Positions 10,221 to 62,416 of a stretch of 64,000 nucleotides of DNA are shown in pieces (the first letter of the stretch is position 1; every line of letters begins with the position of its first letter). Below the pieces are notes generated by a model. The model was not told the DNA's origin and ran no database searches. It saw only the letters and a list, made by a program, of their open reading frames with translations. The stretch spans positions 95,974,379-96,038,378 of the forward strand of contig NC_068982.1 in the NCBI RefSeq assembly GCF_001194135.2. The letters run 5' to 3'. The stretch is from Octopus bimaculoides (lineage: Eukaryota). The position numbers and the translations under genes were made by a program.

Positions 10221-10517
10221 TTTAGTAGAAAGTGGGTTATACATCTTTAGATTGTATACCTGACTTTCTACTATAAAATTGAAGAAATTGACGGAACGCT
10301 GAACTCCAGACTAAACAACTTAAACAACATTTATTTACTTGGTAAAACATACATATCTTTAGAGGTGAGAATAACGAGCTGTCGAGTATAAGACCGAAAG
10401 ATGTAGAGACAGCTTTAAACACACGTCCTTGCTCAATCGCTGGCCAGCGTGAAAGAGAATGAATTGAGCGGGAAACGCTTGCTTTATTAATTCTACGCAT
10501 GCGCAGGCGTTACTACA
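10221..10517 (-). mobile_element. Solo-LTR-like element, hairpin family, copy A
   Basis: On minus starts TGTAGTAACGCC; GCGCATGCG motif, AATAAA, terminal hairpin 10221-10275; 4-bp direct repeat CTAC 10217-10220 / 10518-10521. Confidence 0.75.
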
Positions 10518-11007
10518 CTACTATCGCCATTCTTCTCATTTAAATATAAACAAGCGCGAGCGTAGCGGAGAACCCATCTCCTTGTCATCACGTGACTGAT
10601 TATTATTTGAAGCGGCAACTTCTTCGAACCGTTCCCGCTCTCGTGATCATTTCTGGGGTTATTTCGTTTCGCCTAACTCTCATATATACTCTGCTTTTCA
10701 ACACTGTTCGTCCTTAAAGAGATTTCATTTCCTCCTAGCGGTTAAACAACATACGTTAAGCATGCGGTACTGGTAATGTTTACATTATAAAGCTGCTTCT
10801 ATTGCACAATCTGAATGTATATGTATGTGTACACTCAACAATTTTCTTTCTGTACGCACAATAGGAATAAATATAAATATAAAAGGCGCCAACTTCGCAG
10901 AGTGTCGAGATGTCCGAGTCGGTATAACGTTCTCCACTCTCACCAATTTTAGAGTATCTTGGGTTGAGCTTCGAATGGCACCCTCTCTATAACAGTTTTA
11001 ATGGCTG

Positions 11008-11354
11008 TATAGGAAAGTTGGTTATACATCATTAGATGTATACCTGACTTTCCTATATAAAAATTAAAGAATATATAACGGAACGCTGAACTCCAGACTA
11101 TCAACTTAAACAACACTTTATTTAGGTGGTAAATATATACATCTTTAGCTCTTGTTGTTACAGCTTCTGTGTGTGTGAGCATAGTTGTTTGGACGTGGGT
11201 ATGTAGTTGCAAGCGAGCTGTCGAGCGTAAGTCCGAAAGATGTAGAGAGACAGCTTAACACGTCCATGCTCATGGTCGGCCGACCGTAAAAGAGGAAGAT
11301 TAAAGCGGGAACGCTTGGCTGTTTAATTCCACGCATGCGCACGGCGTTACTACA
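11008..11354 (-). mobile_element. Solo-LTR-like element, hairpin family, copy B
   Basis: On minus TGTAGTAACGCC...CTTTCCTATA; hairpin 11008-11057; TSD GCTG 11004-11007 / 11355-11358. Confidence 0.8.
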
Positions 11355-11785
11355 GCTGTTTATTCGATCGAAAATATTAAAGAAGCAGACATGACACGGC
11401 ACAACCAGACTTTTCCTTGCATGACATGCTATTTCCACCTTTACTACTTTGATATATTAATTCTAATGCAATGAACATCTTATACTAATGTATCACGACA
11501 AATTATGTTCAAATACTTGTGCGGGTTTGTGAAATTACTTCACAAATTTTCCCATTAACTATTCAATAATACAGTCCAGCAACATTGGCACACCCAGCAA
11601 TCATTAATGACTTTCAACACTATAAATGGCAATCAAGCAACAGAAGATCCGTTGAAAATTTAAGATAACTTGGTTTTTATTAGGGAACAACTTGCAACCT
11701 ACTCTTCCCTCACCAGAAACCTTTTTACAGGCAGTGAATGTAGGCGTACCTCTACTTGGTTGACAGGGCAGTTTCCAACGCAATA

Positions 11786-12110
11786 GTTTCCCTGACTTCA
11801 GTGGATCGCTATATGACGAACCTGGTCACAATGACCATGTGTGGGCCTCTACACCTGAAGTAGTCCTTTGATAGTCTGAGTCAGTTCCCTTCTTGTTCTC
11901 CTGTCTTCGCCATTCATTGCTTGCCACCTCATTTTACTAGGCCCCCACCGTTAATGCTGCGACATCACCGATGTCATTCTACATCCACACTCTTATTCTG
12001 TCCTTCAAGTCGCACACTGTTATCATCTCAATGCCGGGCTGCAGCTTCATCAAGAGATGGTCGGAGAAACCAACCACAAACGCCAGTTTGACCACTTTCT
12101 CCAGCTAGGA
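11786..12110 (-). mobile_element. Degenerate Ty3/Gypsy gag fragment
   Basis: Minus-strand translation LEKVVKLAFVVGFSDHLLMKLQ..., FRCRGPHMV, and a CCHC-knuckle remnant CDQVRHIAIH*SQGN. Confidence 0.5.
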
Positions 12111-12112
12111 TC

Positions 12113-12895
12113 TATTTTAAAACGGGGGCCACAGTATTTTCTTAACGAAACACTGGTACAATGTGTCATATAAAACATATTTTTCTCTTAGTCTTCTTAA
12201 AAAAAAAAAGAAATCCCTAAGTTATTCCATGTTAAAGTTGTTGTATTTCTGTAATTTCAACCAATCACTGACGTCCATTCAGCCGATATACATTAAGTGC
12301 CGACTACATAAACAAACGATTCTGAAACAATTCTATCGGTGATAAAATTATTATTTCCTTGTCAAAAAATGGCTGAAGCATATTGGCAGTAGCTAATAAA
12401 CCTTTCTATTATAGGCTAACCCTAACCGTAGGGTTAGGGTAAAACAGCAAATTTANNNNNNNNNNNNNNNNNNNNNNNNNNNNNNNNNNNNNNNNNNNNN
12501 NNNNNNNNNNNNNNNNNNNNNNNNNNNNNNNNNNNNNNNNNNNNNNNNNNNNNNNNNNNNCAAATAAAACGAAGCTATGGAGATTAAATACGCTTTACAC
12601 CGCTTAATCAGCCAAAGGAGTAAATATAAACAACTGAATACTTGTCAGTGATTGGTTGAAATTATCGAAATAAGACAATTTTTTACATGAAATAAATTCG
12701 AATACAAAAATATTTTTCTGTTCTATAACACAAAATAGATAAGTATACGAAGTTTGAAAGCCTTTCGGACCAAAAACACTACGTAAAACATTAATGAAAA
12801 CTGTGGCCCCCCAAGTATACGAAGTTTGAAAGTCTTTCGGTACCAAAAACACTACGTAAAACATTAATGAAAACTGTGGCCCCCGTTTTAAAATA
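12113..12895. mobile_element. Unclassified MITE with 23-bp TIRs (spans an N gap)
   Basis: TATTTTAAAACGGGGGCCACAGT (12113-12135) / ACTGTGGCCCCCGTTTTAAAATA (12873-12895); internal IR TTCAACCAATCACTGAC / GTCAGTGATTGGTTGAA; about 70-bp subterminal tandem duplication. Confidence 0.75.
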
Positions 12896-13096
12896 AATCG
12901 CAAATTGAGATGTCACATTTACTATATTTGAGTTTCGTTTCATTTTAACCTATATTCTTAAACCACGTGCTGTGTGATTATTATTGTAGTGTTCTCCCAA
13001 ATAATATCGGGAAAAGTCTATCTTAAATAGGTGTGAAGGAAATAACTAGGAAAATGTACATATAATCAACTATCGTTATTATTCCTAAAATTATAC

Positions 13097-13621
13097 GGGT
13101 GGACATTGGAATTAGACACTGAGGGAAAATGGCTGTAACTTTTTTATATTTTAATTTTGACGATTTTCGTTTTCGATAATGTATTCTATATGTCACGGTC
13201 ATGCGATTCCTCCTAAAAAAAAAATTTGGACCACCCCTCCCCCACATCAGTCTGTTAGAAATTAAAACGTATAAACGTATNNNNNNNNNNNNNNNNNNNN
13301 NNNNNNNNNNNNNNNNNNNNNNNNNNNNNNNNNNNNNNNNNNNATGTGGAGTCCCCACCACGAAACTTGATATGCTAGAAATAACAGCTAAACGCGGACA
13401 ATCCAAATCTTGCATTGGTCCAGATGGACTATATGTAAATAAATATGAAGGAAAAAATGCGCTTTGGCAAACGGGGTTAGGGGGAATCGCATGACCGTGA
13501 CATATAGAACACATTATCGAAAATCGCCAAAATTAAAAAATAAAAAAGTTACAGCCATTTTCCCTCAGCGTCTAATTCCAATGTCCACCATTATACGTTT
13601 TAATTTCTAACAGACTGATGT
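13097..13621. repeat. Compound inverted repeat around an N gap (probable MITE copies)
   Basis: 13097-13210 inverts with 13483-13589; 13244-13275 inverts with 13590-13621. Confidence 0.65.
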
Positions 13622-14399
13622 CACATAATGCAAGGCAGTTTGACTAAATCGATTTCGGCCTAGTGACATTTATAAACAGTCTCAACTTAAATTATGTAAA
13701 TCATGCATCTGCTTCTTCAACAATATTAAGATTTTAATGTTTATCAGACTCTAAACTCTTCCTTACTAAAGTTGCAAATTTTCCTCGCAAATTAGTTGTT
13801 TGTAAGAATTAAAATAAATATACAACAAAAACGTATGTGGTTAAGTAAACTGAGCATAGTAACCAGCTGAGATCCTCGATTGTCACTTATAGCTGTACCA
13901 TGGTTAGCAACGTTATCGAAGCAACACGAAAACTAAACTGAAGATGGAAACACCAGACACATTTTATTCATTTCCATCGTTTACTGCACGCAGTAGAATA
14001 CAGGACGAAAAAGTAGTTACTTAAAATACAACGAATATAATAGAATATCTGTAAGGAAAAAAAAGATGGAACCAACACATTAATGCGGTCAGTTTTTCAA
14101 TTAAACACAGTTAAAGGGTTCTCAATGTCAAGAACAAACTTGATGTTTAGCAAATTTATCAAGGTTCGGAAAACCACAAGTTTGTAAAGTTGGAAAGAGA
14201 GCCGCCTATAAAAAGATGTACCGGTGGTTGGTCATAGATTTTTTTTTTTATGTACAATAAAGGTAAACATTGTAAATAATGCATCTAAAAAAAGAACCAC
14301 TTGCGTATAAACACATGTCTTTTTCTTTGTAACATTGAAAAAAAAAAAAAACAGAATGAATGAGTAACCGCTGAAACTTTTTACGAAAGCAGCGCTACC

Positions 14400-14531
14400 A
14401 GTTTGCTAGATTAATTAGGTCTTTCTTAAATCAATTTGTTCTGCTGTTTGCGTTGTGTTGTCATTTCTACCCTCTATGTTCTTTAGAATCATTTCAGTTA
14501 ATATATAAGAAAGACAAAGAAAACGGTAAGT
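14400..14531 (+). promoter_or_regulatory. Putative non-coding first exon and splice donor of zinc-finger gene 2
   Basis: AAAACG|GTAAGT at 14525/14526; about 450 bp downstream aligns with 29063-29480 upstream of gene 3; CpG-containing context; TSS not determinable. Confidence 0.55.
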
Positions 14532-16473
14532 GAACCTGTTAAAGATTATATATATCTTGGAAATTCTAGCAAAAATATGTCTACTCCTGAATATCTTTAT
14601 TTGGGCCTACTGAACGAGAGAAATAGATAAACAAGTAGGGCTACTTTCGATGGGGACTACCTTCTATCAAAACAAATATTGCATCGAATACTGACTAAAA
14701 TGTCAGATGGAAAGAAAATTTGAATTTTCTCTGCATTCGTGGTGAATATTTGAATGTATTATATTTATAGTATTCTATTATGAATGTATAAGCGTACCCA
14801 GTCAGCATCTCCACACTGTTTACCAAATCTGTAGATATGCTAATGTTGTTTTGCTTGCACGGTGAGATTATTTAAGGTGACTATCAGCTCGATGTCAGGA
14901 ACCGCTTTATATTGTGTCGCTTGGATACCGTTAGAAAACTACGCTACAACTGAGTAGTTGATGTCTAAAGTTTTGAACTTTTGTGGAGTTATTGTAAACA
15001 ACAGAATATATTGGTGGGGCACAATGGGTAATATTTTTTACTTTAAAAAAAATCTTTTTTATAAATGTTTACTATCTTACGAAAACTATATTTAAGATAT
15101 CTTGGTCAGAAAGAGGGTCTTGGGAAAATGGTACATATGTAAGGACGACCGTGCGAACTCATAAAGGAGAAATGGTGACGAATGGAAAAACAGAGGACTC
15201 CTTTTATTTAAACGCGTCACACGGTCGAACACAAAATAATATATATCAGTGATGATATACATGATATGTTATGCTACGATAACATAGATGACCAGTAATG
15301 AAAGACCACAACCGTATTAGATGAATAACAGAGATATTTATTATGGCGTTAAAGATGTATGTCTGTGTGTGGATGCGACATATAAGAACATAATCAAAGA
15401 CAGGCCGTCATACAAAGAAAAGTGTGTATGTGAGTTATTACAGCAGATGGAAAGAGAGTCAATAACACGAGCAATTATACCAGTTCTTTAGTACACAATA
15501 GTATGAGTCTGTATGTGAAAGAAGTGAGTTGGGGCTGTGTGTGGCAGAGCTGATCACTAGTTGTGATGCCGTGGCATCGATGCCGGGCCGTGATTCTTGT
15601 TATACAGATGTTCGTCGCTGGCTGAGATCTCTTGTCTGTTTATTATCGTGGTGAAGCTAAGTCACCTAACAGAATTATGATCTTATTCACTATATTCCCA
15701 TCTCAGATTCAAACACTTATTGCAGCAGTCCTTCAGTAACCTGTAAAAAAATTCAGAAGCTTAGACTTCTAACCAGGCCTATCAACACCCTCTCATAATG
15801 GTTTAAAACAGGTAGGAAGAAAATGAGAAACCAGAAAATTACTCATTTTGCCTCACCTACCCCTACACATTCTAAATATAGCTAACAGTACCTGAAATTT
15901 TGCAGTATACTGTTATATGTGAATGTGTGTCTATTGGTCTTCTGTTTTTATTTAAATTGTATCAATGCTATAAAACAAAGCAAAATGATAACTGGTATCT
16001 AAAATGTTTGTGTTGTAAATGGATTGGGGAATAACTATTTTCTGTAGTTTTTAGTCAAAGGTTGGAATGTAATAATGAGTGACTTCATGTCAATAATTGA
16101 GGTAACCTTTCTATGGATGTGAACTAATATTGTTGGTGGGCAGCAGCAGTGCAATCCTAGATGGAGGCAACAACAAAACTGACATAACCTTTCTCTAACA
16201 ACATATTTGACATTGCACTGCCTACTCAGACTTTGTGACTGAGAGTTTAACAGAAACCATTGTTATTTTGAAGGACTTTAAGTCACTGACATTCACCGAG
16301 CAAGTTTCAATATACACACTATAAATAGACTAACATATAACTATCTACACTGAAATCAGAATATAATGTTGTTTATGCTGGAGTTGAGACAGATGGTGCA
16401 ATCAAGTGAGCCACATTGTAGGCTCAAGACTTCCTAACTCAAGAGCAAGTTTTAACAAATTAGTTAACAGACA

Positions 16474-16880
16474 TTTACTCTTTTATTTGTTACATTCATT
16501 TGACTGTGGCCATGCTGGAACACCACCTTTAGTCAAGCAAATCGACCCCAGGACTTATTCTTTGTAAGCCTAGTACTTATTCTATCGGTCACTTTTGCCG
16601 AACTGCTAAGTTGCAGTGACGTAAACATACCAGTATTGGTTGTCAAGCAATGTTGGGGGTACAAACACAGACACGCAAACATATACACACACATACATAT
16701 ATATACATATGTACAATGGGTTTCTTTCAGTTTCCATTTACCAAATCCACTCACAAGGCTTTGGTCGGCCCAAGGCTATAGTAGAAGACACTTGCCCAAG
16801 GTGCCATGCAGTGGGACTGAACTCGGAACCATGTGGTTGGTAAGCGAGCTACTTTACCACACAGCCACTCCTATGCCTAT
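16474..16880 (-). mobile_element. tRNA-derived SINE (same family as 235-580)
   Basis: Near full-length match to the other copies. Confidence 0.88.
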
Positions 16881-18426
16881 GGCAGGTTTTCTTAAGGTGT
16901 CAAAAGTTGTTCATTTACCTTGCCTGTTTTCTGGAACCAAAAATGAAAGGTTCATCTCACATTGTACGTAAAACCTTCTCTGTCAAGTTACCAATCAAGA
17001 CAGGCAAATCCAGATATGACTCCACTGTAGGAAAATTTATGTGGAAGACTTTCAAGTAACAATCCCAGTTGAACCATTGTTCATAACCGTTGCATAGTTC
17101 AAATGATCAACAAGGATATGAACATTTTATATCATCATTTTACATCTATTTTTCATACTGGGATCAGTTGGACAAGTTGTCATGGTATGAGTCAATTCTC
17201 ATTTGAAGTTTCTGCCCTTCTAAATGGGTTGGATGATCATGTCTTGCTTGTACATTTCATTTTGGACTTGGTTTCTTTGACTAGACACCCTTCCTATCAC
17301 CAACTGTGTTACAGAGTATACTAGATACATTTTATTGCAGCAACAGCACCAGAAAAGCACTAAATCTCAGCTCATTCACCTACCACTTTAGGGAGCGTCC
17401 TGAATGGATTTCATTGTAGCATTAATACGAGTGGAGTTGCTCTGTACCCATAAGATTAGAGATTCCATACCTCCCTATAATATTCTGTCTTGTGTGATTT
17501 TTTGGTTTGCTGGAAATAGCAGCCAAATCTCCCTCAAATCAAGCAAATGGAAAAATTATATTAATGTTCCATTTATTGTGTATTCTTATCACCATCATCA
17601 CTTAACATCCGCTTTCCATTGAATTCAAAAGAAACTTGGCTGCTATTTTTCGTAAATCGATTGACTGTATAGTGGCTTACTTGGAGGCTCTTAATAAAGT
17701 GAGATGATTATAGCTAGAACGTCTCTAATCATTGACCTGCTTAATCAGATTTGATCTAGGGTTAAACAACAAAAACAACTGTCTTTTCCAAAACTTTCTT
17801 CTCAATTCTATCCATTCATGTAAATTGTGTATTTCTTCTGGATATTCTGTCTGTGTACTTCTTGTTTTTCCATCTTTCAATATCTTGTGCCAAGTCTATT
17901 CTTCCTACTAATATCTAATACATCCTTATATCTCATACTGTCTCTTTATTTTAGGGTGTCTAGTAAATTTGAGACAAGAAAATACATCAGAAAAAATAAC
18001 AGATGAAAAGATATCATGAATAGAATACATGCAACACTACATATAATGAGGCTTGAGAATATATTTCTTGGACAATGTTATTAAATGGTTATATTTGAGA
18101 TATTTAAAAGATACTGTTAACTGACCGATGTGTAATGTCTTGTGTAAATGGCTACATCTTAAAAACTGATTTTTAGTTACAAGAATATAATTGATTGCAA
18201 GAAATGACTCTATTTGGAAATGAAGTTTCAGTATAACCTAAGACATCTACAAACAAATCTACCATCCATTATCAAAGTTAATAAACTGGTGTCAACAGGA
18301 AACGTTGAATCAAAAGTTTTATGGGTTTCACCTCATTGATATACTGTCCTATAGCCAGCCACTCTGGCATTAAATACAAAATATAAAGAAAAAAATATCT
18401 GTATTTCATGAAAAGCAAAAGACATT

Positions 18427-20157
<1,731 letters not shown>

Positions 20158-20660: not shown

Positions 20661-21865
20661 TATTGGTTCATCTAATAAATATTGCAGTTTTTTTCATTTG
20701 CATGGACTAAAAGTCAGACAGGGATAGGATAAACTACCTGCATCAACCTGCTATAAAAGCAGTAGTAATTTTACCTTACACTTATTTTTAGTGCAATTTT
20801 TGAAGAGTGCGGTTCGATTTTAAGTTATTTTTTCAAAGCTGTAATGGAAGTGACAAAGGAGCATATTCATCATATTTTGCTTTATGAGTTCAATAATGGC
20901 AACAACACAATGGAAAGTGCGAGGAATATTAATGCAGAATATGGTGATCAGACAATAAGAATAAGCCAGTGGTAGTTCCAGAAACTTCAGCCTAAAAGAT
21001 GAGCCTCAACCTGGAAGATACGTAGAGCTTGACAAGGACGTCTTGCAAAGCCTGGTGGAACAAAATCCCATCGTAATTGTTGAGGAACTAGCAGAGAAGC
21101 TTGGATTTGGTCAATCAACCATTCATTGACACCTGCGTGCCATCAAAAATGTCAGCAAATTGGGTCAATGGGTTCCTCACAAACCTTCCAAGTCTAATCG
21201 TATACAGAGAGTGAATGTGTGCTCCTCTTTGCTGTCACATCTCACAAATGAACCTTTTTTGGACCGAATAGTGACTGGTGATGAGAAATTGGTTCTCTAT
21301 AAAAATGTCAAGCACCAAAGATAGTGGGTAGGGAAAGGAAAAACACCATCATCCCAGGCTAAAGAAGGTCTTCGCCCACATAAGGTGTTGTTATCTGTTC
21401 GGTGGGATATGAAAGGTTTAGTCCACTTTGAACTTTTAAACCCAAACCAAGCAATAACAAAGGAGACCTACTGCAAGCAGCTTGAGTGGCTTAAGTCAGC
21501 TATAAGAAGAATGACCATCTTTGATTTCAAGACGAAACGTGTTCTTCCATCAGGATAATGCTCAGCCACATACAGCAAGGATGACATTCCAAAGGCTAGA
21601 GCAGTTTGAATGAGAAACGATGCCCCACCTACCATATTCACCAGACATTGCCCCATCTGATTATCATATATTCTGTAGTCTTCAGAATCATTTGGATGGA
21701 AAAAATATGAATTCTGTAGATGAGGTCAGAACAGTACTGAAGGAGTATTTTTCATCACAGACAAGTGAATTTTAGAAGAGAGGCCTTGCAAGTCTACCAG
21801 ATCTTAATTTTGAAAAAATAAAAGAAGTATAAAAAAAAATACATTGTTTATGAGATGACCCGATA
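20661..21865 (+). mobile_element. Mariner transposon, near full length, dead
   Basis: Degenerate TIRs TATTGGTTCATCTAATAAA / TTTATGAGATGACCCGATA; frameshifted transposase (EHIHHILLYEF, LGQWVPH, RIVTGDEK, HQDNAQPH, PYSPDIAPSDY). Confidence 0.88.
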
Positions 21866-25004: not shown

Positions 25005-25311
25005 ACATCATCATCATTTAACATCCATTGTCCATGCTGGCATGGGTTGGACTGTTTGACTGGGCTGGCATGCTAGAAGGCTGTGCAAGGCTCCAGTCTG
25101 ATTTGGCATGGTTTTCTATGGCTGGATGCCCTTCCTAACACCAACCATTCCAAGAGTGTATTAAGTGTGTTTACGTGCCATTTGCATGACACTGGTATCT
25201 ACCATGACTGTGATTTTGCTCAGCTTGATGGGCCTTCTTTCCAAGCACAACATAATGCCAAAGGTCTTGGTCATTGCCTCCATGAGGCCCAACACACAAA
25301 AGGGGTGTAGT
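25005..25311 (-). mobile_element. RTE LINE 3' tail, degenerate, running into the gap
   Basis: Matches the other RTE tail copies. Confidence 0.75.
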
Positions 25312-26009
25312 NNNNNNNNNNNNNNNNNNNNNNNNNNNNNNNNNNNNNNNNNNNNNNNNNNNNNNNNNNNNNNNNNNNNNNNNNNNNNNNNNNNNNNNNN
25401 NNNNNNNNNNNNNNNNNNNNNNNNNNNNNNNNNNNNNNNNNNNNNNNNNNNNNNNNNNNNNNNNNNNNNNNNNNNNNNNNNNNNNNNNNNNNNNNNNNNN
25501 NNNNNNNNNNNNNNNNNNNNNNNNNNNNNNNNNNNNNNNNNNNNNNNNNNNNNNNNNNNNNNNNNNNNNNNNNNNNNNNNNNNNNNNNNNNNNNNNNNNN
25601 NNNNNNNNNNNNNNNNNNNNNNNNNNNNNNNNNNNNNNNNNNNNNNNNNNNNNNNNNNNNNNNNNNNNNNNNNNNNNNNNNNNNNNNNNNNNNNNNNNNN
25701 NNNNNNNNNNNNNNNNNNNNNNNNNNNNNNNNNNNNNNNNNNNNNNNNNNNNNNNNNNNNNNNNNNNNNNNNNNNNNNNNNNNNNNNNNNNNNNNNNNNN
25801 NNNNNNNNNNNNNNNNNNNNNNNNNNNNNNNNNNNNNNNNNNNNNNNNNNNNNNNNNNNNNNNNNNNNNNNNNNNNNNNNNNNNNNNNNNNNNNNNNNNN
25901 NNNNNNNNNNNNNNNNNNNNNNNNNNNNNNNNNNNNNNNNNNNNNNNNNNNNNNNNNNNNNNNNNNNNNNNNNNNNNNNNNNNNNNNNNNNNNNNNNNNN
26001 NNNNNNNAA

Positions 26010-26985
26010 CATGACATCATTATCACCACACACATACAGAACACAGCTATAGCCAGTTCCAGCGCCGACGTCTTCACCACCAATGTACTGTCTACCACAA
26101 TGTCGTGCGCCAGCAACCCCACCACCAGGGACACACCAATATCAACACACTCGGTTTTATCTTCACTGTATGAGTGGAGTATCCACTCACGGACAACAGT
26201 CAGAACTAACCAACTAGAATATTCAGTACCAGGTAAAAGGTCTCAACTAGCATCCGACACTCAACTACAGCTCTGCTCACTGACCACGACTTCCTGCGTA
26301 TTAGCATTCTAAATCTCCTTGCGTAACTTTTATAGGATATTCTGTACCAGGTAACACAAGTCCCAGCATCGACGCTCAACTACAGCTCTGCTCCTTTGAC
26401 CACAACTTCCTGCGTATGGACATGCTATAATCTTGTGTAACTCTTATACGAACTGGATTTTTTCTCTACAGACACTTTTACTATGTTCTGTGTTTTTTCT
26501 CTCTCACACACACACTTGTGCACTCATATATTTTCTTTCCTTTCAGAAACATTGCATGCATGTATCTCACAAGTGTACATTCATTTCTTTGATTTTTCTT
26601 TGTGTGTGTTTGTGCCACATCTTGTGGGTGGTTTTCAGTGGCCATCCTGCCTCAGGCGTTCCTCCAATTTCTATTTTCGTGCGTTCCGCACTGGCAGGGG
26701 AGCCCTGTAGTAACGCCTTGTCTCGTGCGCATGCGTAGTCATCAATATCCAAGTTTGGCGCCCTAATTCTCTCTCTTTTCTCGCCGGCCGGCGACGATGG
26801 CAGACGTCCAACAGCGGAACTCTCTAACATGTCAGCACCAGAGCTTCACAAATAACTGCTGCCTATTTTCACCATAAATAAATATTGTTGTGTTGATAGT
26901 TCGGAGTCAGCGTTTCGTTGTTTATTTAGAATTTTAATATAGGAAAGCAGGTGTACACCTAATGGTGTATAACCACTTTCCTATA
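26010..26985 (+). mobile_element. 3' part of an LTR retroelement: internal region, polypurine tract and LTR (hairpin family copy C, 26706-26985)
   Basis: GGCAGGGGAG at 26693-26702 just before TGTAGTAACGCC; terminal hairpin 26938-26985; no 4-bp TSD (GCCC/GGGG); about 118-bp tandem duplication 26221-26455; 5' part lost in the N gap. Confidence 0.6.
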
Positions 26986-27244
26986 GGGGCTTCGCCTCTT
27001 TGCCTCCACGAGGCCCTACAAAAGTTAACCTTAATAACTGATGTATGTAAAAAGACTGAATCAGCAGCACTTTCACAAGGTAGCCATTTTGTATTTATCT
27101 GGAATATTAACCACTGGTAAACCAAGACACTTAAATATTGAAAAGGAAACCTTCCTAGTTATATCATGAACTGAAAAAAAATAGCATTTTCTGCTTGACC
27201 AAACATCTAAATTGGTCTTTGATCATAGACTATAATAATATATT

Positions 27245-27590
27245 ACGGAGATGCACTTGCATAGCAAGTGACCTGATCTGAGATCGTGTGCTGGAACGAA
27301 AACAATTGCAGCGTGGAAGGTGTTTATAAGCCATTTAAAATAACACACAAAATCCGTTAGATTCACTTCAACATTTAAATTTAATTTGTCAAAATATTTT
27401 CGTCACTTTGAGACCGCGACCTAATCACTGACAAAATTCTGTGCAGCACAGAATTTTGTCAGTGAACAGGTCGCGGTCTCAAAGCGACGAAAATATTTTG
27501 ACAAATTAAATTTAAATGTTGAAGTGAATCTAACGGATTTTGTGTGTTATTTTAAATGGCTTATAAACACCTTCCACGCTGCAATTGTTA
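27245..27590. mobile_element. Penelope-type non-autonomous insertion: 144-bp near-perfect palindrome with hammerhead motifs
   Basis: Arms 27301-27444 / 27446-27589 (3 mismatches, 1-nt spacer), unique 56-bp extension 27245-27300, 13-bp direct repeat ATAATAATATATT 27232-27244 / 27591-27603. Confidence 0.8.
27455..27505 (+). ncRNA. Minimal type I hammerhead ribozyme with G3:C8 swapped core
   Basis: TTTGTCA-GTGAACA-G-GTCGC(GGTCTCAAA)GCGAC-GAA-AATATT-T-TGACAAA: stems I and II pair fully, palindromic stem III, intact GAAA. Confidence 0.7.
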
Positions 27591-27639
27591 ATAATAATAT
27601 ATTTTCAGCAAAAATTGTGATCACAATTATATTTCAATA

Positions 27640-29749: not shown

Positions 29750-29943
29750 CTCTTTACTCTTTTACTTGTTTCAGTCATTTGACTGCGGTCATGCTGGAGC
29801 ACCGTCTTTAGTCGAGAAAATCGACCCACTACTTATTCTTTGTAAGCCTAGTACTTATACTATAGGTCACTTTTTGCCGAACCGCTAAGTTACGGGGACG
29901 TAAACACACCAGCATCGGTTGTCAAGCGATGGTGGGGGGACAA

Positions 29944-29974
<31 letters not shown>

Positions 29975-30140
29975 CAACGGGCTTCTTTCAATTTCCGTCT
30001 ACCAAATCCACTCACAAGGCTTTGGTCGACCCGAGGCTATAGTAGAAGACACTTGCCCAAGGTGCCAGGCAGTGGGACTGAACCCGGAACCATGTGGTTG
30101 GTAAGCAAGCTACTTACCACACAGCCACTCCTGCGCCTAT
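29750..30140 (-). mobile_element. tRNA-derived SINE (same family as 235-580), well preserved
   Basis: Full head-to-tail match, many CpGs retained. Confidence 0.9.
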
Positions 30141-31615
30141 ACATTAGGTCAATTTATCTTTCTGTTGTTTATTTTCTTCGTTTCGGATATTCATATGATG
30201 TTGGGGTCCATATCAACAAACACCTCTTTTTTGGGTACAGCACCTTTACCAAGATCTGCTCCTTTTGATGTTTAAAGTAACATTCGAAATGACCTGACGA
30301 TTTAAGATTTCATCTCAAAACAGTGTGCACCTTTTACAGGACGGCATGTCTTAGCAGAGGCTGTGCATATACCTACTCTTCCAGTATAGGATATTAGTTA
30401 TTTTGTAACTTATTCATAACTGGTCTCCGTGTACTGAAGCTATTCCTATATCGACCACTTGAAGGATCAATAAATAGAGTACTCACACCTCTAGGTCTGG
30501 CTAAGGGTATTACCAACTTGGGTAGTCACTCTGGGTGTTTTGTACTTGTGGGCGCCACATCTTGTATTTGGGGGTCTTCAAAATAAAAGAGGAAAATAAA
30601 AATGATGAATAAAATAATGCTTTATTCTTATAGTTAATAAACTATAGAAAACATTCCTGCTTTTACTGGTTTTACTTGTGAAAAAAAATTTTTTTTAAGG
30701 GATTCATTTGTAAGGGTGCCAAGATTCAGCTTGCTGAGAGCACAATACTTGGATCATTTGTGTAGTTTACATTACTGAAATTTTGATAAGTTAAAAAATG
30801 TATTCATTAAACTTAGCCAAATCTCACCTCAAATCGCATAGCACTGTATTAAATAAGGAAAGGACACATTAGGTAATGTAGTACTAATGTGTACTACAAA
30901 CCTCACAAAAGTCAGGATGTTCATGGCTAGAATGCCTCATATTATGTCTGCTTGATTTCAGTTGATCGAAGATTAAACAACAACTGTATCTTTTCCAAGA
31001 CTTTAGCATTACTCTCCTCTTTCACCTAATCCTAACTGTTGTGTATCCCCCCACCCACTAGGCTCTTCTTGTTTACTTCCTGTTCTAACTTTCAATATCA
31101 GTCTTTTCTCATTAACATTAATATTTAACAAACTGATATCTTGCTCTATCGTTTTATTTCAGGATGCCTGGTAACATTAGGACAACAGTTCGTCACTCAG
31201 GGTTCTACAACAAATTAATGAAGACTGTCACAAACTCTAGAAATGACATTATCAGAGAATACAAGTAATGATGTTAATATAATCTTTAAAAAGTCTGAAG
31301 ATAGACATATTAGTTGAAACTTAAAAGATAAAGTTAATTGGTTGGTATATATCTGAACCAGTACATGCATCTTGAAGTGATTCTGATTACAAGAAAATTA
31401 TCCATTTTGAAAAATGACTTTATCCGAAGAATGCACTTTGACAGCGTTTTATCTGAACATTTTTACTGGACAATCTACAATCCATTGTCAGAGATAATAA
31501 ACTAATGTCAGTGGGAAATTTTGAATTGAAGTCCTTGTGGATATTATGTCTCTTAGACAGCCACTCCAACAATTTTGAATATTAGGAAATGAGTTTTATT
31601 TGTATTTTATGAAGA

Positions 31616-32980
31616 ATGGATGATACTATGGAAAAGAAATTGTCTATAAGTCATGTTTCTGGTGAAGTACAATCTGATAATGGAGATTTATCACATCAAA
31701 CACATGTAGACATAGAGAAGCAATCATATACGTGTGACGTTTGTGGAAAAATATTCTCCAAGAATTGTGTTTTAACTTCTCACAAATGCATTCACACAGG
31801 TGAGAAACTATACCACTGTGATATCTGTGGTAAAAAATTCTCACACAAAAGAACATTAATTTATCATAACCATATTCACACAGGTGAGAAACCATACCAT
31901 TGTGATATTTGTGGTAGAGCATTTCCACATATGAGAACATTAACTTCTCACAAACATATTCACACAGGAAAGAAACCATACCACTGTGACATTTGTGGTA
32001 AAACATTTTCTGAAAGTGGAACGCTAACTCGTCATAAACGTATTCACACTGGAGAGAAACCATATCTCTGTGACACCTGTGGCAAAGCATTTACTCGCAG
32101 TGTACATTTGACTCGTCACAAACGCACTCATACAGGTGAAGAACCATACCACTGTGATATTTGTGGTAAAACCTTTTCGCAAAGTAGTACATTAACTTCT
32201 CACGTACGTATACATACTGGTGAGAAGCCATATCACTGTGATATCTGTGGTAAGACGTTTTCCAAGAACTGTAATGTAACTCGTCATAAACATATTCATA
32301 CAGGTGAAAAACCTTACCATTGTGATATTTGTGGCAAAGCATTTTCTCTCAGGTGTAACTTAACTTATCATAAACATACACACACTGGTGAGAAACCATA
32401 CCATTGCAATGTCTGTGATAAAACATTCTCACATATGTGTAAATTAACTTACCATAAATATATTCACACAGGTGAGAGACCTTACCACTGTGATATCTGT
32501 GGTAAAACATTTTCTCAGAGTACATATTTGAATTATCATAAACAAACTCACACTGGTGAGAAACCATATCATTGTGATGTCTGTGGTAAAAAATTCACAA
32601 AGAGTAGTTCATTAACATCTCATATACGTATTCACACAGGTGAAAAACCATTCTCTTGTGATATTTGTGGTAAAACGTTTGCTGAAAGAGGAACATTAAA
32701 TCGCCACAAACATATCCACACTGGTGAAAAACCATATCATTGTGATATCTGCGGTAAAACGTTTACTCATAAAGCAACTTTGACTCATCATAAATCCACT
32801 CACACAGGTGAGAAACCATATCATTGTAACATTTGTGGTAAAGCTTTCACACAGAGTAGTGCATTATCTTCTCATAAACGAATTCACACTGGCGAGAAAC
32901 CATTTCACTGTGATGTTTGTGATAAAACATTTTCTCACAAGAGTAATTTAATAGGTCATCAGCTTAAGTCACACAAGTAA
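31616..32980 (+). CDS. C2H2 zinc-finger protein (cluster gene 3), 454 aa, 15 fingers
   Basis: Uninterrupted C2H2 array; homologous acceptor ttttatttcag|G at 31162/31163; N-terminal leader homologous to genes 1 and 2. Confidence 0.95.
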   Translation: MDDTMEKKLSISHVSGEVQSDNGDLSHQTHVDIEKQSYTCDVCGKIFSKNCVLTSHKCIHTGEKLYHCDICGKKFSHKRTLIYHNHIHTGEKPYHCDICGRAFPHMRTLTSHKHIHTGKKPYHCDICGKTFSESGTLTRHKRIHTGEKPYLCDTCGKAFTRSVHLTRHKRTHTGEEPYHCDICGKTFSQSSTLTSHVRIHTGEKPYHCDICGKTFSKNCNVTRHKHIHTGEKPYHCDICGKAFSLRCNLTYHKHTHTGEKPYHCNVCDKTFSHMCKLTYHKYIHTGERPYHCDICGKTFSQSTYLNYHKQTHTGEKPYHCDVCGKKFTKSSSLTSHIRIHTGEKPFSCDICGKTFAERGTLNRHKHIHTGEKPYHCDICGKTFTHKATLTHHKSTHTGEKPYHCNICGKAFTQSSALSSHKRIHTGEKPFHCDVCDKTFSHKSNLIGHQLKSHK

Positions 32981-33307: not shown

Positions 33308-33507
33308 CTCTTTGGTTTTTAAACTGGCCATATAAGGCCCTAAGATTCTACCTCTTTTATGTTCAAACTAGCCTGATCCAGCTTCTCACATCTAAATAAA
33401 TAATCACATCATCAATATCTCAAAGCTATAAGATGACGTATGATTAATTTTTTAAAATGTGAATAAATAATTATTACATTTGACAGAGTAATCTGAATGT
33501 TGAAGAG
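33308..33507. mobile_element. piggyBac-like MITE
   Basis: TTAA|CTCTTT...GAAGAG|TTAA; homologous to 44631-44847. Confidence 0.6.
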
Positions 33508-33872
33508 TTAATGCTCTCATTAGTTATTTAAATAAGCAACTTCCATCATGTTAAACTTATGAGAAAAATTTCATCATATGCAATAAACCAAATGAGTTCA
33601 ATTTCTGTAACTAGTTCCTAAATTTGTTAAGTATTGGGAGGCCCATTTGTGACTGATTTCATGTTATGTATGTTGACAAATCTCCCTCCAAGCCATACCT
33701 ACAGAAGTTGTTGAATTCAGTGCGGCCAGCTAATAAGCCACTTGTCAGTATTATAATGCTGTCAAGTGGTGAGTTTTTTTTAAAATGCAAAATATACTAT
33801 CATGTCTGTAGTAAAGTATTCTCTCATTATTGTAGTTTGACTTGTGGAGGGCTTCATTTAGTTAGGAAACAA

Positions 33873-34044
33873 CACCATCATCATCATCATCATCATAGTT
33901 TAACGTCCGCCTTCCATGCTAGCATGGGTTGGACGATTTGACTGAGGACTGGTGAAACCGGATGGCAACACCAGGCTCCAATCTAATTTGGCAGAGTTTC
34001 TACAGCTGGATGCCCTTCCTAACGCCAACCACTCAGAGAGTGTA
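33873..34044 (-). mobile_element. RTE LINE 3' tail
   Basis: High identity to the other tail copies; (CAT)n end. Confidence 0.85.
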
Positions 34045-34869
34045 AGGGTTAGGGTTAGACTGCAAAATGTTCTCTCATTATAACAATGTCCTACATGAAT
34101 ACACATAACAACTTACCTTTAAAACAATGCATTTAATTGAAAGAAACTGTCACAATCGAAATTACCACACTGGAATTTTAAGACAGTAAGTCTTAGAGAA
34201 TGGATGAAATAGTTTTTATAATGAAATTTTGTTGAAATTATTTAAGAAATAGTCATAAAACAACACATGTAATATTTACTATTCCTGGTTCTATGAAGTA
34301 TTTTGCTTTTATTATAGTAGTAGTTACACATTTTTGAGAAACCCTTCTTCAAAATACCCAAAGATATTATAGATGTATTTGTTCTACTCTAAAATATTTA
34401 TGTATTAAATTCTTCCAAATTGTTTCTTCTGGTATGGACAGAAGCTAGAACTTACATTTCTTATTTTATAAAATTTGTTTTGGAATTCTCAGAGAGTAAA
34501 ATTGAAGAGTTTTGCAATGATAAAAACTAGTTCTAGATCTTACACGAAATAACATGCTAAAAAAGTTTACCATCACAGTATGTACTGATTGAATTCTTTC
34601 TGACAAGCTTCCAACTGAAGTAATGAGAAGTAGATAAAGTCTATACGTAGGTATCTTAGCTCCAAGATTCTCATGCCAGACATATTCAAATATTTTGGTG
34701 ATATCAAATGGAGTAAAATTGCTTTCACTGAACTTATTAAAGGCAAAGTACTATTTGTGAGTGACATAGTTTCCTTTGTAAATTTCATTGTGTAAGCCAT
34801 ACTGTTGGTTACAAGGAAAGAGAAAAAAATTAAAGAATTAAGATTGTTATATTCATTTTTATGATTGTT

Positions 34870-35560
34870 TGAAATGAGGTGAGTAAATTTGGAAAGGTTG
34901 CTGGAAGAATTTTAGCTAGGATGTTTGGATTTGTGTTAGGATATATAACCATAGATACCATGTTTCTAGTGAAACAACTGCAAGAGAAGTTTTTGGTTAG
35001 GAAGAGACAAAAATTTTCTTTGCTTTTATTGATCTTCTTTGGATATTCTTTAAGGATCCTTTTTCTTATTATAGCTTTTGAGCTGATAATTTTTTGGAGG
35101 CATTGAATGCATTGCTTTTAGCATGAAAATCCATGTAACCAAGACAAAGTTTGTATCCTATGGTATCTTTCCCTCTGAAAGGATCCCTGTCATAGTCATT
35201 GGTGTGATTTTAAAGACGGCTGATCAATTCAGGTACTTTGGTACTATTTTCACTGCCATAAGCCAGAGTAAAGATGAGATAGACATTCGCAACAACTATG
35301 CATGGAGTGTGTTCTGCCAACTTGAAAGCCAGGTTTGTTTAAGGTGAGAAATCCATCTAGCAACAAAAGTTCTCGTCTAGCAAGGACTTCTTATCCTGCT
35401 TTATGGCTGCAAGATATAGCCAATGAGCAGTATACTAATGAAAGAAAACGGAAAGTATTTAACCAGTCTTGCCTTTTCAAAGTATTGGAGATGATTGCCT
35501 CCTTTGCACACATGATGTTTGAAGTGAGTGTATTAGGTTGATATTTGGTGAGTTTGGAAA
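34870..35560 (+). mobile_element. Degenerate RTE-like reverse transcriptase fragments
   Basis: TIDTMFLVKQLQEKFL...FAFIDL and DQFRYFGTIF...DEIDIR motifs, frameshifted. Confidence 0.65.
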
Positions 35561-35589
35561 GGTTGCTCATTTTTGGTGGTAGAACATAC

Positions 35590-35952
35590 TCAGAACTTGA
35601 GAGAGCAAGATTGAAAAGTTTTACAATGATAAAATTTAATTGTAGAGCACATTTGAGAGTAATGGCAAGTACATAATCTGGGCCAGTGTTCTTGTTTATT
35701 TGTAGTGCTCAAATATTTGGTAACTATAAATAAAATTTTTATTGAGTGTATGCATTGTGGAGTTGGGAACAATGCAGGCAGTGAATGGGAAAACTTCCTC
35801 TGAAAGAGTGCTAATCGTGGAGAAATTTTGGTTAAGGAGTGAAGTGGATCTAGATTTTTAAATGTTGATAGAGATTCATGTGGCAAGGGACCAGAACAGG
35901 CCACCATTTGGGAGACAGGAGTGTTTGCATGTGGGCAAATGTACAAAGACAT
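35590..35952 (-). mobile_element. Degenerate CR1-like LINE 3' fragment
   Basis: Minus-strand ORF LDPLHSLTKISPRLALFQRKF..SLPALFPTP loosely resembles a CR1 ORF2 C-terminus. Confidence 0.45.
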
Positions 35953-36359
35953 CTTTTAAAATGTAAAACACTGATAGACAGACAGCCTCAAACCCCAGTA
36001 ACACTTGAAAAGTAGACTTGCTTTAGTAGTAACAAGAATGTATGTAGGATCTGTGAACAATGTAATGATTCCACAAAAGAGACAGGATCTCTGATGATCT
36101 GATAGAGAACTAGGATTTCAAATAAGATATATGCATAGGAATGGTTAATAGCAGGAACACTTCATGAAAGCAAGTTCGTTAACTGTTCATATAGTTCACC
36201 AACTATAGTTTCTGTCACCTAGATTATTTAAGCAGTTCTGGGGATAACTATAGTGAAAGTATTACAGCCCAAAAGAGGAATAAGTGGAAGAAATTCTGTG
36301 TATTGTTCTATTGATATCAAAGAATCTGTTGCTTTCAAACCTACTTTATGAAACTTATC

Positions 36360-37612
36360 CTGGGCAAAGTTCAGGGAGCTCCTACCTCTGCTGGCAACTA
36401 AGGTCCTCTTGCTCAGGGTGAAAGGTAGACTGTATGATACATGTGTGTGAACTGCCATGCTACACAGCAGTGAAACATGGGCCATGACTGCTGAGGACAT
36501 GCGTAGGCTTGAAAGAAATGGAGCTAGTATGATTCACTGGATGTGTAATGTCAGTGTGCATACACGACAGAGTGTAAGCGCCCTGAGAGAAAAGTTGGGC
36601 ATAAGAAGCATCAAACGTGGTGTGCAAGAGAGTTGGCTGCACTGGTATGGTCATGTGTTATGTATGGATGAGGACAGCTGTGTGAGGAAGCGCCACTCCC
36701 CAACTGTGGAAGAGGTAGACCCAGGAAGACATGGGATGAGGTGGTGACCTTTGAACATTGGACCTCACAGAGGCAATGACAGGAGACCAAGACCTTTGGA
36801 GATATGCTGTGATTGAGAAGACCTGGCAACTAAAGTGAGATTACAGCCATGCATGTCTGGCCCAGTTAAGAGTACCCTTGATGCATCAAGTGATATATGC
36901 TTGAGAAGACCTGTTGAGTCAAATAAAACCAATATCATATCTGTGGCCAGTGCCCACTGACTGGCTCCCATGCTGGTGGCATGTAAAAAGCACCATCCAA
37001 TCGTGGTTGATGCCAGGTCCACTTCACTGGCCCCTATGGTGGTGGCACATAAAAAGCACCATCCGAACATGGCTAATGCCAGTAACCCCCAACTGGCTCA
37101 CATGCCGGTAGCACATAAAATGCAGTATCCAGATGTGATCGATGCCAGGACCGCCTGACTGGCCCCTGTGCCAGTGGCATGTAAAAAGCACCATCCAAAC
37201 ATGGCTGATGCCAGTACCTCCTGACTGGCTCCTGTGCTGGTGGAACATAAAAGGCACCATCTAAATGTGGCTGATGCCAGTACCCCCTAACTGGCTCCCA
37301 TGCCAGTGGCATGTAAAAAGCACCATCCAAACGTGGCCGATGCCAATACACTCTGACTGGCCCCCGTGCCAATGGCACATAAAATATACTATCCAAACAT
37401 GATCGATGCCAGGCCCGCCTGACTGACTTCTGTGCCATTGGCACATAAAAAGCGCCCACTACACTCGCTGAGTGGTTGGCATTAGGAAAGGCATCCAGCT
37501 GTAGAAACATTGCCAGATCAGATTGGAGCCTAGTGCAGACTTCAGTCAAACCGTCCAACCCATTGCCAGCATGAAAAACGGACGTTAAACGATGATAATG
37601 ATGCAAGGATTA
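36360..37612 (+). mobile_element. 5'-truncated RTE LINE (ORF2 C-terminus plus 3' UTR)
   Basis: MLHSSETWAMTAEDMRRLERN...WYGHVLCM...GRPRKTWDEVV, followed by a 66-bp array and the tail shared with many window copies, ending (GAT)n. Confidence 0.9.
36945..37455 (+). repeat. 66-bp minisatellite, 8 units, in the RTE 3' UTR
   Basis: GGCAYRTAAAA anchor at 36978, 37044, 37110, 37176, 37242, 37308, 37374, 37440. Confidence 0.9.
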
Positions 37613-38504
37613 GGATGCATGTACAGTCTGCAAGGGTGACAGAAAACTTATGAGGCCATATTCTGTTGAATGTGCAATGTTCACCTGTATGAACGGTGGA
37701 GCACAAATGGTCTAAGATAGTATTAAGGTGATTAACCAATGTGTCTAGGAGAGAGAACTGAACTATTCCAGAGAAGTGTGTGCTTCTGTGCAATCAGAAG
37801 GCACTGAAAAAAAAGAGTTCTGCAACATTTGCAGAAAATCTCTTGGCAAGGGAGAAGGATCTGCTCCATTAATAGACAACAGAACAGGTAAACTATACTT
37901 TTGGCATTATTTTAAAATTTTTGTCTCAGATTAGTAATATCCAGAATTGGAATCAACAAAAGTGATGAAAAAAAAGGTGAGTGAATCTAACACTTCATAT
38001 TTTGCTAGTTCAGAAGAGCAGCAACTGCTATGAATGACAGACAAAATATGGTTAATAGTTACTGCATGCTGTGAGTAAATGTTTTGTCAATGTCCTGGGA
38101 ATATCCATAGATACAATCTACAATGTTTGCATTTGCATCAGTGCCAGATATGTGAATAGTATTCTATGAAATACTTTATATATGACAAGCAACTTTACAG
38201 AACTGAAAATGAAACCTTAGGTAGTGTTTTAACTCTCAAGAAACAGTGCGTCCTTTTAAATATGATTTTGTCTGTTTAGAGATCATCATAGAAAGGAAGG
38301 CATAACATTTGTAGAGACAAAAGTTTAAATTAGAAATTAATGAGGTTTCAATATTTTAAGTGTATCCAACATAAGTATATGTTCTGATGCTCTTGTTTCT
38401 GTTAAAAGATGTGTTCAGGAGCTTTACTTACAAACCAGTGAACATCTGACATGATGTCTAGGCAGCTGACATGTAGATGACATAACACACATATGCGAAA
38501 GACT

Positions 38505-39536
38505 ATGGAAGAGAGGTTTTGTCCTTACTAGACCTGTGATACTTGTGGTAAAAGATTTACAACACAATTTACATTTAATTCATCAGGAACACACTCACAC
38601 TCATAAAGAACCATACCTTTGTAATATTTGTGGTAAAATGTTTACACAGTGTGGTTCATTAACTTCTCAAATATACATTCATATTGGTGAGAAACCATAT
38701 CACTGTGATATCTGTGGTAAAACATTCTCCAATAATTGTGATGTATCTTGTTATAAACATACTCACACAGGTGAAGAGACATACTATTGCGATATTTGTT
38801 GTAAAACATTCTTTCACGGGAGTAATATAATTTATTAGCATACACAGGAAAGAAACCATACCATTGTAATGTCTGTGGTAAATCATTCTCATTTGTGTGA
38901 ATGCGTATATGAGATGTTCAAGCACTACTTTATGTGACTATTTTACTACAGTTTTATGACAATGGTATGGTTTCTCCCCAGTGTGAGTATGTTTATAATC
39001 ATTTAAATATGTAGTAACGTTGTGCGCATGCGTAGTCTCACACATGCGTGGAATTAAACAAGCAAGCTTTCCCGCTTAATTCTATCTCTTTCTCGGTTGG
39101 CCGGCCATTAACAAGGACGTGTCAAGCAGTGTCTCCAACATTCCAACCTGGAAACAGTCTCTTTACGTGTATAGCTGTCACTCTCCATCTTTCGGACTTA
39201 CACTCGACAGCTCGCTTACATCTACATAACAACGTCCCAACAACTATGCTCACACACACAGAAGCTGTAACAACAAGAGCTAAAGATGTATATATTTACC
39301 ACCTAAAATAAATGTTGTTTAAGTTGATAGTCTGGAGTTCAGCGTTCCGTTATATATTCGTAATTTTATATAGGAAGGTCAGGTATACATCTAATGATGT
39401 ATAACCAACTTTCCTATAAATATGTACTGTGAGAAAATGTTTTACTGCAGATATCACAATTATATAGTTTTTCATTTGTATAAATATACTTATGGTAAAT
39501 TAATTTACACATATGTGAGAATGATTTACCACAGAC
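38505..39536 (+). pseudogene. C2H2 zinc-finger pseudogene (cluster gene 4) with an internal inversion and an LTR insertion
   Basis: ATG homolog at 38505; degenerate fingers on + to 38891, continuing on - at 39536-39419 and 39009-38892; finger order matches gene 3 fingers 5-11; stops and frameshifts. Confidence 0.85.
39010..39418 (+). mobile_element. Solo-LTR-like element, hairpin family, copy D
   Basis: TGTAGTAACG...CTTTCCTATA; TSD AATA 39006-39009 / 39419-39422; interrupts zinc-finger sequence; hairpin 39369-39418. Confidence 0.85.

Positions 39537-40801: not shown

Positions 40802-62416
<21,615 letters not shown>

Follow-up and report, generated by a model that had tools for sequence, protein, structure and literature searches.

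Four Probable LTRs of One Retrotransposon Family

Four copies of a short repeat in a 64,000-nucleotide (nt) stretch of the Octopus bimaculoides genome (hereafter the window; chromosome CM046602.1 of assembly GCA_001194135.2, near 95.97 Mb) are best explained as long terminal repeats (LTRs) of one LTR-retrotransposon family, or of sister subfamilies. The family is probably Ty3/Gypsy-like, and its LTRs carry a hairpin similar to the U5 inverted repeat (U5-IR) of avian retroviruses. We lean towards this explanation as a whole without regarding it as secure. The case is built from the four copies plus the first six bases of a fifth; it draws on 4-bp target site duplications (TSDs), the order of signals within the repeat, and a terminal hairpin in which pairing has outlasted the divergence of its sequence.

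A sequence-only reading of this DNA had described four diverged, solo-LTR-like copies sharing a start, an internal motif and AATAAA. Both blastn and an nhmmer profile recover the same copies on the same strands and find exactly four in the window, 280-409 bp long. Copies A (10221-10517, 297 bp) and B (11008-11354, 347 bp) lie on the minus strand, copies C (26706-26985, 280 bp) and D (39010-39418, 409 bp) on the plus strand. The start TGTAGTAACG, the motif GCGCATGCG and AATAAA are present in all four, as had been reported. D has a duplication of the GCGCATGCG region and a 44-bp insertion in U3. The description as solo LTRs is upheld for A, B and D and probably fails for C, whose apparent partner is an LTR start flush with an assembly gap. 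No gap falls within any copy or TSD; the gaps nearest to A, B, C and D are 1939, 1102, 699 and 13003 bp away, respectively.

Termini, Target Site Duplications and Insertion Sites

Where exactly do the elements end? Three copies are flanked by exact 4-bp direct repeats, in agreement with the earlier claim: GTAG for A (on the minus strand, with the upstream copy at 10518-10521 and the downstream copy at 10217-10220), CAGC for B (11355-11358 and 11004-11007) and AATA for D (39006-39009 and 39419-39422). By our own arithmetic, three exact 4-bp matches in four copies would occur by chance with a probability of about 2e-7. LTR retrotransposons are expected to produce TSDs of a fixed short length (4-6 bp), and here the length is always 4 bp. 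The immediate flanks of C differ (GCCC vs GGGG), and this copy has no TSD of its own.

The ends of D have been fixed in a second way. When its flanks are joined with both TSD copies retained, the product exceeds each of three paralogous finger repeats (84 bp) by exactly 4 bp; this excess over the zinc-finger paralogues is an independent verification of D's two ends and of the 4-bp duplication. A decayed C2H2 zinc-finger array (window positions 38470-39570) is the site of the insertion: finger-like sequence lies on both sides of D, and the best paralogue of the disrupted pseudogene is the gene at 31616-32980. The empty site of A belongs to a tandem repeat of the host, of about 25 bp, AATGGCGATAG(G)TAGTTT. 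This repeat supports GTAG as the TSD, which means that A ends in CTACTAAA, two bases beyond its hairpin. The two extra bases between hairpin and TSD are AA (10221-10222) and may represent an unprocessed U5 end or a subfamily difference.

Two other placements of the ends were considered and rejected. A long TSD of 14-15 bp for A is suggested by a second AATGGCGATAG(G)TAG 14 nt from the element, which is part of the host tandem repeat. A CA end for B could be obtained by borrowing from the flanking CAGC; its TSD would then mismatch.

All four copies begin with TG. At the 3' end, B, C and D have TA whereas A has AA; three of the four copies end in CTTTCCTATA, and none of the four has the canonical termini 5'-TG...CA-3'. 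The idea that these are LTRs with a non-canonical TG...TA end is supported by the termini together with the LTR anatomy described below. Insertion was most likely carried out by a Ty3/Gypsy-type integrase that makes 4-bp target duplications. This assignment follows from the TSDs and from an LTRharvest survey of O. bimaculoides, in which all LTR retrotransposons found (275 copies) were Gypsy. No coding internal region was found in the window, so there is no pol from which to place the family within Ty3/Gypsy.

The insertion sites of A and of the element that includes C both lie within short host tandem duplications, with units of about 25 bp and about 42 bp (10200-10530, 25271-25294 and 26997-27020), and D lies within the 84-bp finger repeats. 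This could reflect either a target preference or merely a repeat-rich region.

A Probable Two-LTR Element at an Assembly Gap

Why does C lack a TSD? Its terminus, CTATA, is directly abutted by GGGG. Upstream, the left edge of the assembly gap at 25312-26007 reads CACAAAAGGGG followed by TGTAGT, and the last four bases before TGTAGT are again GGGG. Since C has no TSD of its own and the GGGG at the gap edge matches the GGGG after C (26986-26989), C is probably a 3' LTR. The upstream TSD copy would be GGGG at 25302-25305 on the plus strand, and TGTAGT at 25306-25311 (plus strand) would be the first 6 nt of the 5' LTR, a fifth copy of the repeat that is cut by the gap. The hexamer TGTAGT occurs 53 times in the window, counting both strands. 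We calculate the chance of finding it flush with one of the ten gap edges and next to a matching 4-mer as approximately 1.6e-5. The sequence is consistent with a pair of direct copies sharing one TSD (GGGG/GGGG), of which the 5' copy is readable for 6 nt only. On this evidence, C is best read as the 3' LTR of an element with two LTRs that extends over 25306-26985, most likely with the 5' LTR and the primer site inside the gap.

The visible internal region (26008-26705, plus strand, 698 bp) is non-coding, with stops in all six frames, and contains a tandem duplication of about 120 bp (26215-26337 and 26333-26451). Close to its end, a purine-rich tract resembling a polypurine tract, GGCAGGGGAG, is found at 26693-26702, 3 nt upstream of C. 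Provided that the estimated gap length of 696 is correct, the element measures about 1.7 kb and is non-autonomous; a wrong estimate would leave room for coding sequence inside the gap.

LTR Anatomy

The copies diverge unevenly along their length. Identity between them is 73-96% in the first 23-30 nt or so, falls to 40-64% with insertions and deletions in the middle, and rises to 70-93% from AATAAA to the hairpin and to 78-98% in the hairpin itself. AATAAA (10330-10335 in A, 11117-11122 in B, 26877-26882 in C and 39307-39312 in D) is followed in every copy by a GT-rich, TGTTGTTTAAGTTG-like stretch, and the hairpin follows AATAAA at a constant distance of 55-59 nt. The ends of the element form an imperfect inverted repeat, in which TGTAGTAACG and TATAGGAAAG match at 7 of 10 positions. 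The motif GCGCATGCG resembles an NRF-1-type site.

This arrangement of AATAAA, GT-rich stretch, variable U3 and conserved R/U5 follows the promoter and polyadenylation plan of an LTR. The LTRs of animal Metaviridae and retroviruses have short inverted repeats, an AT-rich box, AATAAA, a GT-rich stretch and a variable U3 (PMC3601003). The distance to the hairpin also bears on its position within the LTR. Cleavage normally takes place 10-30 nt downstream of AATAAA; with the hairpin at 55-59 nt, it would be located in U5.

The Terminal Hairpin

Every copy carries a terminal hairpin of about 50 nt, with a folding free energy of -19.6 to -24.6 kcal/mol and z scores of -5.8 to -7.8 against shuffled sequences. 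The hairpins lie at 10223-10273 on the minus strand in A, 11008-11057 in B, 26938-26985 in C and 39369-39418 in D. When 41,840 segments of 55 nt from both strands were folded (0.1 percentile, -23.1), the four hairpins were among the 12 best loci. The sequence-only reading had placed the hairpin exactly at the element terminus. This is the case in B, C and D; in A, which starts with TGTAGTAACG and ends with CTTTCTACTAAA, it stops 2 nt short.

The shared architecture has 21 pairs. An outer stem of 11 bp leads through a small internal loop to an inner stem of 10 bp, which contains one bulge and is capped by a loop of 4 nt. The outer stem of A is TAGTAGAAAGT/ACTTTCTACTA, and a 1-nt bulge in its inner stem is the sole irregularity in a dedicated alignment of the hairpins. 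In the consensus fold of the segment from AATAAA to the end, the hairpin remains the main structure. A covariance model of the hairpin matches the four copies only, together with a marginal match at 50880-50927 that is an unrelated hairpin. Rfam gave no match at gathering scores across the window, nor any match up to E = 1 over copy D.

Pairing is retained in 83 of 83 alignment cells. Four pairs have changed on both sides, and two one-sided A-to-G changes have given G·U pairs, one each in C and D. In A, three adjacent outer pairs are altered on both arms; in C, C-G takes the place of a T-A pair found in the inner stem of the other copies, and pair 11/41 of the outer stem has been deleted from both arms. 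The stem variants that were first pointed out are confirmed, namely inner TACATC/GATGTA versus TACACC/GGTGTA and outer TATAGGAAAG/CTTTCCTATA versus TAGTAGAAAG/CTTTCTACTA. The observed pairing and covariation values were reached by 1 of 500 shuffles, and controls in which the alignment was slid showed 31-47% pairing and no double changes. The LTRs thus have an inverted repeat with compensated pairing of the U5-IR type, its position in U5 being estimated from the AATAAA spacing.

What could such a hairpin do? Under the U5-IR explanation, the 5' end TGTAGTAACG would serve as the U3 integrase site and would be followed by a variable U3 bearing the promoter-type motif GCGCATGCG and, in B and D only, by a TATA-like box. 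AATAAA and the GT-rich stretch would form the polyadenylation site, leaving a U5 of about 110 nt. Lying in U5, the hairpin would be present in the genomic RNA at the 5' end only, immediately ahead of the primer-binding site, and its 3' arm would double as a U5 integrase site ending in TA instead of CA. By analogy with the retroviral U5-IR stem, it may provide a structure at the primer site that aids the start of minus-strand reverse transcription. Lineages that remained active would then have kept the pairing while the sequence drifted.

What Maintains the Pairing?

The pairing may instead be a mutational by-product in otherwise ordinary LTRs. Template switching or hairpin-templated repair, either at a quasi-palindrome in DNA or by reverse transcriptase, would copy one arm onto the other. 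The three adjacent changes of A are mirrored on both arms, and C has lost one pair on both; mirrored multi-base changes have been described as the mark that template-switch mutations leave in RNA stems (PMC8794818). The two strands also fold equally well, as expected from a process at the DNA level. By contrast, the hairpin is intact in four of four copies from about three lineages, with the same internal loop, bulge position and AATAAA spacing, while the two one-sided changes have remained as uncorrected G·U pairs. Template switching supplies variants but leaves the absence of decayed copies unexplained. We regard it as the main rival to selection, though a fairly unlikely one. With only about three lineages, selection and template-switch mutation are not separable.

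Somewhat less probable again is that the hairpin is under selection for a role elsewhere: as a DNA architecture for integrase, as a cleavage or termination element of the 3' LTR, or in packaging or dimerisation. In the integrase version, the hairpin would offer the U5 end a second time, inverted and 28 bp further in. The 3' arm is indeed the U5 terminus itself, and the 5' arm, TATAGGAAAG, shares 7 of 10 positions with the U3 end, TGTAGTAACG. The location of the hairpin 55-59 nt downstream of AATAAA and its lack of strand bias would also suit a role of this kind. However, A has altered its U5 end and the partner arm and not its U3 end, which fits poorly with an integrase that recognises both ends by sequence. 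The U5 end (CTACTA) and the opposite arm of A changed together while the U3 end stayed TGTAGTAACG, which suggests that pairing, and not the sequence of an integrase site, has been kept at those positions. Dimerisation loops are self-complementary, whereas the loop found here (TAAT/TAAA) is not.

Can the folding energies identify the strand on which the structure acts? There is no strand bias in folding, so the energies favour no one strand or molecule as the acting one, and the RNA-level role in the U5-IR explanation is putative. A preference for sense-strand RNA, based on the two G·U pairs, was considered and rejected: such a result has p ~0.25 under neutrality, and the energies are without strand bias.

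Are the Copies LTRs?

It is improbable that the copies are not LTRs at all. They might be DNA transposons resembling miniature inverted-repeat transposable elements (MITEs), for example of Ginger type or mobilised by another DDE transposase, or retroposons resembling short interspersed elements (SINEs) that depend on a long interspersed element (LINE) and carry a 3' stem-loop. The units are short (280-409 bp), with 4-bp TSDs, a TGT start and a 10-bp imperfect inverted repeat (7 of 10), and no coding partner has been seen; LINE/SINE pairs use 3' stem-loops. Against this, the inverted repeat is only about 10 bp long and imperfect, AATAAA and the GT-rich signals are orientation-specific, and the profile is one of a variable U3 and a conserved U5. 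The element containing C appears to have a pair of direct repeats with one common TSD. A poly(A) or microsatellite tail, 5' truncation and a tRNA-like part are all absent, and the TSDs are always 4 bp.

Specific classes were rejected on similar grounds. A SINE or other LINE-dependent retroposon would be expected to have a Pol III head (tRNA-, 5S- or 7SL-like), a 3' tail of poly(A) or simple repeats, and TSDs that vary in length; in these copies neither a tRNA search nor Rfam gave a match, there is no tail, and the TSDs are fixed at 4 bp. MITEs and Ginger-type elements are expected to have inverted repeats of tens of bp, and only 7 of 10 terminal bases match here. Helitrons have the form 5'-TC...CTRR-3', with a hairpin 10-12 nt before the 3' end, and insert into AT with no TSD; the octopus copies have TG...TA ends, carry TSDs and have their hairpin at the terminus itself. 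Finally, B, the spacer and A do not make up a single terminal-repeat retrotransposon in miniature (TRIM): the two copies are about 70% identical and each has its own TSD.

Comparison with Known Systems

The closest parallel to the hairpin is found in avian sarcoma/leukosis viruses. Cobrinik et al. in 1991 and Miller et al. in 1997 are said to have described a U5-IR stem beside the primer-binding site that overlaps the integrase recognition sequence, and for the start of reverse transcription its structure reportedly counts rather than its sequence. The octopus inverted repeat would likewise lie inside U5 and over the integrase site at the LTR end, with a presumed adjacency to the primer site. 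It differs in that the stem is far longer, with about 21 pairs and a 4-nt loop, and in that the host is a cephalopod retrotransposon, as opposed to a vertebrate virus, in which the function is putative.

Similarities to animal Ty3/Gypsy LTRs (PMC3601003) are the short inverted repeats starting with TGT, the AT-rich or TATA region, AATAAA, the GT-rich stretch, a U3 that is more variable than R/U5, and the 4-bp TSD. In contrast to the ...ACA of those LTRs, the octopus 3' end is ...CTATA, and the family is known here without pol.

Copia elements make 5-bp TSDs, compared with 4 bp in the octopus family. In a survey of 50 plant genomes with LTR_retriever, TG...TA was one of seven non-canonical types of LTR terminus (bioRxiv 10.1101/137141). 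The octopus LTRs share with this type both the TG...TA ends and a short length, plant non-canonical Copia LTRs having a mean of 272 bp (bioRxiv 10.1101/137141). They differ from it in that 89% of the plant non-TGCA elements are Copia, and the survey makes no mention of a terminal hairpin.

Molluscs are already known to harbour small LTR elements that are non-autonomous and accompanied by solo repeats, biv-TRIM of bivalves being an example (PMC6934838). The octopus family resembles such TRIMs in its short direct terminal repeats, its short non-coding internal domain, the many solo repeats and the mollusc host. TRIMs are smaller (<1 kb, with LTRs of 100-250 bp), compared with about 1.7 kb, going by the estimated gap length, and LTRs of 280-409 bp in the octopus, where the primer site falls in the gap.

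Hairpins linked to priming are present at the junction of LTR and internal region in the self-priming Tf1/sushi elements and, as the Conserved Hairpin Site, in fungal GalEa Copia elements (PMC5445492). The octopus elements would likewise have a conserved hairpin where the 5' LTR meets the internal region, with a conjectural tie to priming. However, Tf1/sushi and GalEa use sequence outside the LTR, which replaces the primer site or pairs with it, whereas both arms of the octopus hairpin are inside the LTR; since both arms are contained in solo LTRs bounded by TSDs, the 3' arm cannot be a primer site. A very doubtful reading, by analogy with Tf1 self-priming and the GalEa Conserved Hairpin Site, is that a small non-autonomous cephalopod element ending in TA does without a tRNA primer site altogether, with the hairpin as part of a priming device; its pairing would then be mechanically regenerated in each replication cycle and not maintained by selection.

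The sequence-only reading had allowed for an unclassified class of element. This is not borne out, as every feature has a precedent, whether in the TG...TA type of LTR or in the U5 inverted repeat of avian retroviruses. The hairpin is an ordinary kind of LTR feature and a new element class is not required.

Limits of the LTR Explanation

Several points weigh against the explanation that we favour. The primer-binding site, gag and pol were not seen in the window, where the primer site would fall in the gap; in the sole two-LTR element, that gap would cover the primer site and all but 6 nt of the 5' LTR. An imperfect purine-rich tract precedes C, separated from the LTR by CCC. A TATA-like box before AATAAA is clear in only two of the four copies (B and D), and the borders of U3, R and U5 were drawn from motifs, not transcripts. 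The 2-nt extension of A past the hairpin is without explanation. Sense and antisense strands fold about equally, A and B better as antisense and C and D better as sense. The hairpin covariation comes from four copies, which represent about three lineages, and one mutational event could account for the three adjacent positions compensated in A. The claim of a selected end structure is therefore sustained in part: pairing is fully retained and there are compensatory changes, but the lineages are few, the cluster in A may be a single template-switch event and there is no strand preference.

Also unfavourable is that no further copy was found in 31 kb of additional octopus DNA. Neither the 8 kb upstream of the window nor a 22.8-kb locus of O. 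sinensis, which was reached through a profile of octopus zinc-finger N-termini (one protein matched), contained a copy. No match was obtained with a translated LTR reading frame as protein query, or in exact look-ups of three open reading frames (ORFs) inside the LTRs. A zinc-finger protein query returned vertebrate proteins only, and two zinc-finger protein sequences looked up in a protein collection were both missing from it. Pattern scans of viral and metagenome contigs gave either nothing or 22 chance seed matches without wider similarity, and a text search of the literature for the LTR start string found unrelated primers only.

Genomic Neighbourhood

The window has a G+C content of 36% and contains a cluster of single-exon C2H2 zinc-finger genes, including a zinc-finger ORF of 513 aa at 1920-3461, which chromosome CM046602.1 encodes exactly near 95.97 Mb. 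One member of the cluster is affected by the assembly. At the gap at 19852-19888, the 182 bp on the left (19670-19851) are 100% identical to the 182 bp on the right (19889-20070), which indicates an unmerged overlap, an assembly artefact. As a result, the zinc-finger ORF at 18427-20157 has an artificial duplication of about 60 aa. At the other end of the window, exons of a CDC5L/Cef1-like splicing factor extend over 55130-62473 (plus strand), with Pfam Myb_Cef at 57095-57313 and 62210-62473.

Two further hairpins are found near the LTRs. A near-perfect palindrome of about 130 bp, TTTAATTTGTCAAAATATTTTCG...CGAAAATATTTTGACAAATTAAA, lies at 27380-27510, about 400 bp downstream of C. With -37.6 kcal/mol for its central 55 nt, this palindrome surpasses every other hairpin of the window, and it has the look of a foldback or MITE-type element. 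A 17-bp perfect hairpin at 9913-9967 (-30 kcal/mol), about 250 bp beyond A, is unrelated in sequence to the LTR hairpin.

Other repeats are abundant. Remnants of mariner-type transposase include Pfam HTH_48 at 6985-7431 (within 6348-7431, minus strand) and Transposase_1 at 21325-21555 (plus strand); the pieces at 6348-6659 and 48407-48850 (plus strand) are mariner-like by eye only. A SINE-like repeat is present at 9154-9409, 25006-25180, 33871-34044, 37076-37609, 42859-43034, 53557-53824 and 59878-60148; some copies contain internal tandem units of about 66 bp, and identity to O. sinensis copies is 77-87%. A second repeat family, with a tRNA-like 'GTEPGTMWLVS' reading frame, occupies 16504-16968, 29852-30265 and 57495-57704. 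ORF fragments at 35090-36744 (plus strand) resemble, by eye, the C-terminal part of a LINE reverse transcriptase and gave no match in Pfam.

Significance for the Family and Its Host

These results leave unchanged the knowledge of how LTR elements work. They do bear on how such elements are detected, because LTR finders that filter on TG..CA would miss the octopus family, and because an assembly gap that probably hides one LTR makes a two-LTR element look like a solo LTR without a TSD. The subfamilies provide, on a small scale, a natural experiment with the U5 stem-loop of an invertebrate retroelement. In A, the U5 end has changed with its partner arm while the U3 end has stayed fixed, which separates a need for structure from a need for the sequence of an integrase site. 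For the host, the copies, which lie in the C2H2 zinc-finger cluster and all carry GCGCATGCG, may add promoters or polyadenylation sites near those genes.

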